From contig JALMLS010000216.1 in the NCBI GenBank assembly GCA_038496445.1, positions 248,001 to 312,000 on the forward strand: a DNA stretch of 64,000 nucleotides, given 5' to 3'. This DNA comes from Trichosphaerium sp. ATCC 40318 (Eukaryota; Protista; Tubulinea). Positions 52,184 through 64,000 of the stretch are shown here, piece by piece. Made by a program: the position numbers and the translations under genes. Each line of letters starts with the position of its first letter. The stretch's first letter is position 1. The notes beneath the pieces are model-generated. The model searched no databases. It was given only the letters and a program-made list of their open reading frames with translations, and was not told the origin of the DNA.

Positions 52184-53257
52184 TTAATAGATCTTTACAC
52201 CTTGTTTACGTAGCTTATTTCTACATTCATCAGTGACATTTATACAACTATCCAGTGCAATAGTGTATGCATCAAACAAATACTTGACACCCTCATCTGA
52301 TATCTTTTTACATCCCTCTAGTTGTATGGTGTGAGCACCAGCCAAAGCCTTAATGCCTACATCACCTACTTTTGTGTAAGATAAATTAACTTTATGCACT
52401 CCAGCCAATGCTTTGACACCTTCATCTGATATTCTTAAGCATTCTACCAATTTTATTGTGTGCACTCCAGCTAGAGCTTTGATACCTTCATCACTGACGC
52501 ACGTGGCTGATAGATCAATGTTGTGTACACCAGCCAATGCTCTGACACCTTCATCACCCACATTTGTGTAAGATAAATTAATAGTATATACCCCACCTAG
52601 CATCTTGACACCCTCATCCGTGATTTTAATACCACGTAAGGATATAGTATGTACACCAGCCAAAGCTTTCACACCCTCATCTGTTACATTCTTACAACTA
52701 ACCAAAGTTATTGTGTGTACACCAGCCAACGCCTTGATACCTTCATCACTCACGTTTGTGTAAGATAGATCAATCTTGTGTACGCCAGCCAATGCTCTCA
52801 TGCCTTCAGCACTAACGCTTGTATAAGATAAATTAATGGTATGTACCCCAGCTAACTCCTTGATACCCTCAGCTGTAACTGAATCACAACGTGTCAAGAA
52901 TATAGTATGTACGCCCGCCAAAGCCTTTAGAGCCTCGTTGGTAACCTTTGAGTAAGATAAATGAATAACTTGTACTCCAGCAAGTAACCTTATATTGTCA
53001 TCTGTTATAAGGTGAGGAACCCATAAGCAAAATTCTGTATTTTTAAGTAAAGGGCTTCCAGAAAGCATATCGAACTCATGTTTGTTCCAAATAGTAATTC
53101 TACCATATCCAACGTGATTATGTACGATATTTTGCAGGAAATGGCATGTTTGGGCTGTCCGAAGTGTAAAAGTGCCTTGCTTAAGAATATGAACGATAAT
53201 TTCAACTGGGAGCGCCACGAGATCAAATGGTTGCTTATTTGAATCGTTTTGTTCCAT
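52184..53257 (-). CDS. Intronless F-box + LRR protein (paralogue of 11789-13141)
   Basis: ATG-initiated single ORF with F-box LVALPVEIIVHIL and about 12 LRRs of type LAGVHTIxLSxTxVSDEGxKA. Confidence 0.92.
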   Translation of the reverse strand: MEQNDSNKQPFDLVALPVEIIVHILKQGTFTLRTAQTCHFLQNIVHNHVGYGRITIWNKHEFDMLSGSPLLKNTEFCLWVPHLITDDNIRLLAGVQVIHLSYSKVTNEALKALAGVHTIFLTRCDSVTAEGIKELAGVHTINLSYTSVSAEGMRALAGVHKIDLSYTNVSDEGIKALAGVHTITLVSCKNVTDEGVKALAGVHTISLRGIKITDEGVKMLGGVYTINLSYTNVGDEGVRALAGVHNIDLSATCVSDEGIKALAGVHTIKLVECLRISDEGVKALAGVHKVNLSYTKVGDVGIKALAGAHTIQLEGCKKISDEGVKYLFDAYTIALDSCINVTDECRNKLRKQGVKIY

Positions 53258-59643: not shown

Positions 59644-61725
<2,082 letters not shown>

Positions 61726-62034
61726 GATGTGGGAAATCGTATTTAGAAAGACTTATATGCCGCAGACTTAACAGGAAAACACTGAATTCACTCCTTACCC
61801 TTTTCAAAACGTACTACGTACGCGTGACTAGATACTATATTTTATAGACCATTCAATGTAAAGATGTTAGCCACATAATATTCACGTGACTACTAGATAA
61901 GGCGATAAAGTCAATTGTATAAACAATAGCCTTAATACCGTTTCTCACTTCAACTCGACTAAGCTGTGCAAGATCTTCAATCGTTCCTTTATTTACATTT
62001 TATTTACAGATATGTACATTTTGCTTGTGGAGCA

Positions 62035-62409
62035 TTAAAAGGAATCTAAGACACGCAATCCCTTGGCATAATCTTCCACTTCTAAAAAAAGATTATTTTT
62101 AATCAGCGAAATAAGAATTTGTCAAAGTACCTGGAGGCAGTGCCTTTTTAGCTCTAACGCGTCGGCGACGCTTATGGGACCTCTTTGATTGTATTTGATG
62201 AGCTTTTTTCTTACGGTTCATCGAACGAAGCTCTAACCAGTCTTTTCCGTCAGTACCCATGTACGCTAAAGAGAATAAGTATTTTCGGGCAAAAAGTTTT
62301 TTGTATTTGACAAACCTCTGCTTCTAGCAAGTTTTGTTTGTAAAGACGTCCTTGATAGCATTGGGCTTTTACCCCCATAGCTTTTACGTAGTTTTCTAGG
62401 GCTATCCAT
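62035..62409 (-). CDS. Small basic protein (90 aa, 2 introns) resembling the histone H3 N-terminal tail, without a histone fold
   Basis: Two canonical phase-1 GT-AG introns keep the frame open: MDSPRKLRKSYGGKSPMLSRTSLQTKLARSRAYMGTDG...KRSHKRRRRVRAKKALPPEVEDYAKGLRVLDSF*. Two TGTAAATAAA signals lie about 27-47 nt downstream. Confidence 0.65.
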
Positions 62410-62998
62410 TTGCTTTGATGATGGGGAGAATATCAGAAATAATAAATCTCGTGAAGTACTTATTGGGAAATTTAGCTAGATTTTTAAGATAGCGTTTCGT
62501 GTCACGTGAGACCGCGTATAAAACGTTGAAGATCATTACAGAAACTACTTTCATGATGACATGAAGCTAACGAACTTCCGCAACTAACGCAAGGTAAAAA
62601 ACTTAGAGAACAAGTACCAAAAAGGATACGATGCTCCAACAACAACAAAATAATTCCGTTTACTTTAACTAAAGAACTTCTTTGTAGAAGTTACTCTGTC
62701 ATGATCCTAGCGCACAAGCGCGCTCTCACAGATCCGTAATAGTACTGCATAATTTTCAAACCTAAATGCCGGATGTGCAGTTTAATACTTAGAGAATAAC
62801 TTTAGGTACAAAAACCATTCTACTACACAACCCAAGAACTCTGTAACGCTGTCAACTTTATGTTTATTGTTTGGGTTTTTGTGCTTACAAAGCTTCTAGC
62901 ACAATTGAATAGAGCGGAATATAAACTCTACTTAATTGTACACCATAACTAACTCCATATATAACATGGAAAGATTGCCAGCAATACCACTATTTAGG

Positions 62999-64000
62999 TC
63001 AGCATCTTGGCATAATTTTCACGCTTGTTTTGCTCTCTGTGTTAATGCTTTTCTCTTTACCGTGTAGTTTATTAGATGATTTTATTATATCACCTAAGCT
63101 CTCCAATGCAAATTGAGGCTGTGGTATCGAAAACGCTCGAGGACTTTCCAAATCTTCTAACACGAAATCACTTTCTTCTGACAAAGCATCAGCATCGCTT
63201 TCTTCAATTTCAAAGTCTTCACTCTCCACAACACCGTCCACAATATCTTCAATGATACTACCGCTACGCCTTACATATCTACAACCTTCTATTCCGAACC
63301 AAGCTTGGAATCTAAACGAATCCATAGCCACCTTTAACAAAAAGTAAGTACATAAAAGACATCTTATAATCAAATGAGTACCTTCGGAAACGGTGTGCGA
63401 ATTATCTCGCGTATATTTCTTTTGTTTAGACAAGCTTCAATAAACTCAATAAAAATGAAAGTGACACTACGTGTATCATCTAAAAGGCGCCTAGCTAACT
63501 CCATGTGTGATTCATTAACAACATCTCTATTCAAATCGAACATAAACTGTGCATGCTTCCCTCTTATAGTAAGCTTCGGGACTTTACCATACACAAGGGA
63601 ACCTCCAAGAGCAAGCTCCATACCAAGGCTTAAAGAAAATATTAGTATCATCAACACAAGGAAACATAACATCCACAAAAAAAACGCACCATCCAACTGC
63701 GAAGACATCACTTTTTGGAGTCCAACCGTTCTCTGAAGCGTCAAAGTCCAGATATCCAATAGTTGATTTACTACTATAAACAGAACTCTGGAAGTAAAGG
63801 AAGGCGTTACCAAAATCACATATCTTAACGTATCCACCAGGCATAATTAGTACATTTTCTCCTTTGATATCAGAGTGTACAATACCACACTCGTGTATGT
63901 GATACAGTCCACGTAATACTTGAACTAGGATATGTCCTATAGCTTCAAGACTCATACCTGCTTTTGCCAATGTACTAGAGTTACAATAGGCTACAGGGTA
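62999..64000 (-). CDS. Divergent non-RD Ser/Thr protein kinase, 5' part outside the window, acidic tail
   Basis: GIVHSDIKGENVLI, KICDFG, SDVFAVG; the APE motif is replaced by GYLDFD. Two introns join ORFs 63584-63970, 63370-63837 and 62999-63433. Confidence 0.8.

Follow-up and report, generated by a model that had tools for sequence, protein, structure and literature searches.

In the 64-kb window (the whole stretch of DNA analyzed here, 64,000 nt), a short spliced gene lies on the minus strand between an acetyl-CoA acetyltransferase (thiolase)-like gene downstream and a protein kinase-like gene upstream. This mini-gene encodes a small, strongly basic protein, the first exon of which contains a segment resembling the tail of histone H3. 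Its features, in the order of transcription, are as follows:

61974..62434, minus strand: whole transcription unit, delimited by the extents of the transcript contigs; mature mRNA of ~362 nt once the two introns are removed
62410..62434, minus strand: 5′ untranslated region of ~17 to 25 nt, followed by the first AUG of the mRNA in the context AAGCAAATGG
62316..62409, minus strand: coding part of exon 1 (codons 1 to 31 plus 1 nt), with the ATG at 62409 and the whole H3-like segment inside
62316..62388, minus strand: H3-tail-like segment (residues 8 to 32, the last codon being finished by 62265-62264), aligning to H3 residues 8 to 29
62266..62315, minus strand: intron 1 (50 nt, GT..AG, phase 1), with 62265 joined to 62316 in runs X1, X5, and X6
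62131..62265, minus strand: exon 2 (codons 32 to 76), encoding a strongly basic core with 16 K+R among 44 residues
62144..62251, minus strand: predicted long helix (residues 37 to 72; AlphaFold2, pLDDT ~90), which holds the R/K cluster
62144-62185, minus strand: R/K cluster (residues 59 to 72) that, judged by consensus, resembles a classical nuclear or nucleolar localization signal
62082..62130, minus strand: intron 2 (49 nt, GT..AG, phase 1), with 62081 joined to 62131 in runs X1, X5, X6, and X8
62035..62081, minus strand: coding part of exon 3 (codons 76 to 91 plus TAA), encoding a short acidic/amphipathic C-terminal helix
61974..62034, minus strand: 3′ untranslated region with two AATAAA signals (62004-61999 and 61993-61988); the contigs end 14 to 20 nt past the second

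We are highly confident that this three-exon gene is genuine. Both junctions are matched exactly by assembled contigs of run X1 (study P1) and runs X5 and X6 (study P3), and a contig of run X8 (study P2), which derives from a close relative here called organism B, skips intron 2 at the same joint and stops at the exon 2 boundary. The contigs extend over positions 61974-62426 (X1), 61988-62431 (X5), 62023-62434 (X6), and 61975-62266 (X8), and no further exon, upstream or downstream, occurs in those spanning 61974-62434. The types of these four runs had been set as RNA by guess only; we take them to be RNA-derived assemblies because the introns of the neighboring thiolase-like gene are also skipped in them and because the intergenic stretches 61736-61936 and 62473-63200 are at zero depth. 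The first-pass annotation, which was made from the sequence alone, had proposed a spliced mini-gene with two canonical introns followed by a poly(A)-like signal present twice, all of which is borne out by the contigs and by the two AATAAA hexamers after the stop codon, whereas the product, given there as 90 aa, has 91 aa in the spliced frame.

Without splicing, the longest open reading frame (ORF) in the region has 53 aa, and the gene is missing from the ORF track because only its unspliced pieces, 47 and 53 aa long, appear in the list. In the spliced mRNA, the first AUG, in good context (AAGCAAATGG), opens the 91-aa ORF, which occupies 276 of the 362 nt and requires both splices; shuffled mRNAs attain 91 codons in only 0.1% of trials (P = 0.001). 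The mini-gene is an unannotated and yet clearly expressed orphan, and ORF tracks overlook short spliced genes of this kind in this genome.

Several features of the surroundings were recorded in passing. The thiolase-like gene occupies 61200-61733 on the minus strand, continues below 61200, and has its 5′ end near 61733; its four introns (138, 46, 46, and 44 nt) are confirmed by contigs joining 61233 to 61372, 61406 to 61453, 61535 to 61582, and 61645 to 61690. The kinase-like gene at 62999-63970 (minus strand) has several short introns and an HSDIK...DFG catalytic-loop motif in the ORF at 63584-63970; none of the four runs covers its positions 62999-63200, and the compared stretch ended at 63200, short of the kinase-motif ORF. 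The palindrome CACGTG occurs 49 times in the window against 9.6 occurrences expected from dinucleotide shuffles (maximum, 19), and one copy lies in each of the intergenic spacers flanking the mini-gene (61883-61888 and 62503-62508). Farther away, an intron-less 357-aa ORF at 52184-53257 (minus strand) consists of leucine-rich-type repeats of ~24 residues with a recurring "AGVHTI"; that exact protein is absent from a collection of 15 billion proteins.

The mini-gene product has a mass of 10.7 kDa and a pI of 11.4, with 14 R and 13 K among its 91 residues (27/91; 30% K+R). The charge is unevenly distributed: residues 1 to 32 contain nine K+R and one acidic residue, residues 33 to 76 contain 16 K+R, and residues 77 to 91 are net acidic. 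In a single-sequence AlphaFold2 model, helices are predicted at residues 20 to 33, 37 to 72 (pLDDT ~90), and 76 to 90, and we assign no compact domain because the pTM is only 0.38. The consensus of a classical nuclear localization signal is K-K/R-x-K/R, and the R/K cluster near the end of the long predicted helix resembles such a signal.

Searches for relatives of the mini-protein returned none. At an E value of ≤10, no Pfam family scored above its cutoff with the whole protein, and exons 1 and 2 searched separately gave nothing. The only candidate, the four-helix C-terminal domain of the proteasome activator PA28 (PF02252, PA28_C), reached 14.0 bits against a gathering cutoff of 20.9 (E = 0.043) and covered 47 of 145 profile positions; we treated it as a chance match between helices. 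Using phmmer, no match was found at E ≤ 10 in the PDB, where H3 chains number in the hundreds, or at E ≤ 1e-3 in an exhaustive search of 1.84 billion representative proteins, and a word-index search returned nothing from 5.8 billion proteins. The exact sequence is absent from the 15-billion-protein collection, and hence the protein is unannotated anywhere in it. A giant-virus origin was probed by scanning IMG/VR, which contained no relatives, nor did the JGI metagenomes; tblastn identified no paralogues in the 64-kb window, and an Rfam search yielded no RNA genes. Foldseek matched the AlphaFold2 model to nothing in the PDB. In the ESM Atlas, exon 2 alone retrieved only unnamed clusters, none above 0.88 (low recognition), with COX24_C as the nearest named cluster at a score of 0.80, a level that according to the tool is often due to chance.

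The resemblance to histone H3, which had been the main point of the first-pass annotation, was evaluated against H3 residues 1 to 78 (identical to PDB 6nj9_A). Residues 8 to 32 of the mini-protein align with H3 residues 8 to 29 at 14 identical positions out of 25, with one gap that corresponds to a three-residue insertion in the mini-protein. The Smith-Waterman score of 52 has a P value of 0.002 against H3 1-78 and of 2e-4 to 5e-4 against H3 1-40 in composition-preserving shuffles, and BLASTP with compositional adjustment gave 21.6 bits and a pairwise E value of 5e-4. As a single comparison, the likeness appears nominally nonrandom, and both of the blocks paired earlier are present: RKSYGGKSP against RKSTGGKAP with seven of nine residues identical, and LQTKLARSRA against LATKAARKSA with six of ten. 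The colinear alignment had been drawn as far as H3 residue ~61, and it is only this first part that stands. The continuation from "GTDG" to "LRVL" (H3 30-61), assessed as residues 33 to 91 against H3 30-78, is at chance level (shuffle P = 0.26), which leaves no basis for the idea that the mini-protein ends at the very point at which a histone fold would start.

The scale of the comparison matters for how this likeness is read. When H3 1-78 was searched with tblastn against the six frames of the window, the mini-protein segment was the best match, and yet its E value was 0.056. Because this value was reached in 64 kb alone, the likeness is not significant proteome-wide, and at the scale of a proteome several matches to H3 as good as this one would be expected by chance. 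Local identity to the tail in excess of composition is thus indicated by the shuffles (P = 2e-4 to 2e-3) and the pairwise comparison but not window-wide, with every criterion having been set post hoc, and neither phmmer search gave a database match to any H3. On these scores, the likeness to H3 8-29 cannot be shown to be distinguishable from a coincidence between two K/R/S/G-rich disordered segments.

Two observations nevertheless lean toward a nonaccidental relationship. Methionine aminopeptidase is expected to leave the initiator Met in place before Asp. With the Met taken as retained on that ground, residues R8, K9, S10, G12, G13, K14, and P16 (the 7/9 block) are numbered like their counterparts in mature H3. 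In simulations that allowed an offset of −1 to +1 and any 9-mer of H3 1-40, such an in-register match arose with P = 7.5e-6 per protein for a generic composition and 4.8e-5 for the composition of the mini-protein, values to be read with the criterion having been chosen post hoc; they correspond to ~0.1 to 1 in-register 7/9 match expected per proteome, rarer than a free local match. In addition, the H3-like part coincides exactly with exon 1, as exon shuffling would yield.

The modifiable positions of the tail are only partly retained. Equivalents exist for K9, S10, K14, K23, and R26, whereas K4, A7 (Leu), T11 (Tyr), K18, and K27 have none; residues 1 to 7, which start M-D-S-P, share 0/7 identities with H3 1-7, such that the ARTKQTA start is absent, and the three-residue insertion alters the spacing between K14 and K23. 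The A-R-K-S/T core used by HP1-type chromodomains and G9a-type mimics calls for Ala at position −2; the mini-protein reads L7-R8-K9-S10 at this place, which would disfavor chromodomains of the HP1 type. Residues G13-K14-S15-P16 present a G-K-X-P motif (the presence of the motif is all that is claimed), which around H3 K14 is recognized by GCN5 (PMC3344931). Because A7 is missing, the segment would, as far as motifs go, fit S10 kinases (R-K-S) and GCN5 (G-K-X-P) better than it would fit HP1-type readers of methylated K9.

That the protein is itself a histone H3 (PF00125) was rejected: there is no match to this family at E ≤ 10, no extra exon, no three-helix histone fold in the model, and no Foldseek match. 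The first-pass annotation was right in describing a product devoid of a histone fold, since no core-histone match in Pfam, no compact fold in the AlphaFold2 model, and no additional exon was found. Of the three outcomes that it had named as refuting its reading, two did not occur, as the gene is transcribed and such a fold is not added by any exon farther downstream; the third, an H3 alignment that loses significance once composition is accounted for, applies in part.

One explanation of these data is that the gene encodes a free-standing mimic of the H3 tail, exon 1 having either diverged from a copy of H3 8-29 or come to imitate it by convergence; we regard this as rather unlikely, and grade in the same way the role that would follow from it, namely, that of a nuclear protein recognized by the readers, or modified by the enzymes, that act on H3 S10 and K14 (perhaps also K9 and K23) and serving as a competitor, a substrate, or an import-signal mimic. 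The 14/25 identities, with a pairwise E value of 5e-4 and a shuffle P value of 2e-4 against the tail alone, the standing of the segment as the best H3 match in the window, the seven residues in the register of mature H3, the retained GCN5-recognized G-K-X-P (PMC3344931) and R-K-S kinase contexts, and the confinement of the likeness to exactly one exon all speak for it, as does the existence of small endogenous H3-like proteins such as PAF15 (PMC7060239) and NOP16 (10.1101/2023.06.13.544862). Set against these are the loss of significance at proteome scale (E = 0.056 already within 64 kb), the phmmer searches without any H3 match, the 0/7 identities over residues 1 to 7 with the ARTK end absent and Leu in place of A7, the missing K18 and K27 equivalents, and the shifted K14-K23 spacing. 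A functional version of this explanation, to which we give slightly less credence still, is that a tail-only H3 derivative, soluble in the nucleus, might compete for the S10/K14 (possibly K9/K23) enzymes and readers or be their substrate or, alternatively, might equip a small chromatin protein with an H3-like import signal of the importin-4/Kap123 type. The roles put forward in the first-pass annotation, as a decoy, a substrate, or a protamine-like protein, are speculative.

Comparison with organism B bears on a second alternative. Its contig covers the mini-gene from exon 2 onward and shows 7 differences in 243 nt (~3%) relative to the window, whereas the thiolase-like gene is identical (0 of 173 exon nt; Fisher P = 0.045). 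The frame is kept, with no frame-breaking change in the contig. Two of the three located changes (A53 synonymous, H54N, and K63T) are nonsynonymous, a number of changes too few for dN/dS. This pattern suggests that the mini-gene may be evolving fast, which would fit a young gene. It could also reflect a real transcript with an ORF lacking a selected function, either as a young de novo gene or as a short noncoding RNA with a fortuitous ORF. The failure of every search to return homologues, the divergence faster than that of the neighboring gene, and the 2/3 nonsynonymous changes are consistent with this alternative. We consider it improbable in view of an ORF that starts at the first AUG in good context, fills 276 of 362 nt, needs both splices, and exceeds what shuffling produces (P = 0.001), of an mRNA recovered in the assemblies of four runs across three studies, and of the intact frame in organism B.

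A mitochondrial protein, in which residues 1 to 33 would be a cleavable presequence (with an R-x-Y-like site at R31-A32-Y33) and the remaining ~58 aa a mature basic protein that belongs to the mitoribosome or binds RNA, as mS38/Cox24 does, is very improbable: the basic, hydroxylated, and nearly acid-free N terminus (nine K+R and one acidic residue in residues 1 to 32) and the COX24_C cluster (nearest Pfam-named in the ESM Atlas for exon 2, at the often-chance score of 0.80) point that way, but neither the whole protein nor exon 2 alone matches PF08213 at E ≤ 10, the mitoribosomal chains of the PDB, mS38 included, give no match at E ≤ 10, the hydrophobic moment of the N-terminal windows is low (0.07 to 0.36) with no clear amphipathic helix, and the protein is basic throughout rather than just at its N terminus, with an R/K cluster that is NLS-like.

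We somewhat favor the explanation that the mini-gene is a genuine, expressed, lineage-restricted orphan of an amoeba-type eukaryote, encoding a small basic protein whose likeness to H3 is not distinguishable from chance. In such an orphan, the 32 N-terminal residues encoded by exon 1 would form a flexible, basic, serine-rich segment, followed by a single long R/K-rich helix (residues 37 to 72) that carries the NLS-like cluster and, as modeled, by a short acidic C-terminal helix. Judging from this composition, the mini-protein may enter the nucleus or nucleolus, where the basic helix could bind nucleic acid or acidic partners electrostatically, in a mode that might, by analogy, be likened to that of other small basic proteins associated with chromatin or ribosomes.

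Among known systems, mS38/Cox24 (COX24_C) and other tiny basic (mito)ribosomal proteins resemble the mini-protein in size, extreme basicity, and the possession of an R/K-rich helix. The mini-protein has no profile or sequence match to them, and the basic block is C terminal in mS38 but not in the mini-protein. The histone H3 tail shares with it equivalents of R8, K9, S10, G12, G13, K14, P16, K23, and R26, whereas the mini-protein has neither the histone fold nor the ARTKQTA start and gives no HMMER match to any H3.

Further known systems are proteins that carry short H3-like motifs outside histones, including NOP16, a mimic of H3K27 (10.1101/2023.06.13.544862), the automethylation motifs of G9a/SETDB1, and viral mimics such as influenza NS1 (reviewed in PMC6028506); the histone-mimic claim for SARS-CoV-2 ORF8 is contested (PMC10833455). 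Like NOP16, G9a/SETDB1, and NS1, the mini-protein would present a short H3-like linear motif in a nonhistone, basic, partly nucleolar-type protein. Their motifs have an A-R-K-S/T-type core within a larger protein and have the support of binding or modification assays, whereas the mini-protein has an L-R-K-S core and a match that, at 25 residues, is longer but degenerate and is known from sequence.

A counterpart in format is PAF15/PCLAF, a small disordered nuclear protein whose H3-like N terminus is read and ubiquitylated by UHRF1 (PMC7060239). It too has ~100 aa, is basic and largely nonglobular, and carries an H3-like segment at its N terminus as a free-standing protein. PAF15 differs in mimicking H3 1-4 together with the K14/K18/K23 ubiquitylation sites and in having a PIP box; in the mini-protein, a PIP box (Q-x-x-[ILM]-x-x-[FY]-[FY]) is absent, none of its three Q residues starting one, and if anything is imitated it is H3 8-29, with the H3 N terminus lacking and no sequence homology to PAF15. 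A full-text literature search on histone mimics and amoeba retrieved no account of amoebae encoding mimics of their own. If the likeness to H3 is not accidental, a host-encoded, free-standing copy of the K9-K14-K23 part of the tail would be a format not seen before in endogenous histone mimicry.
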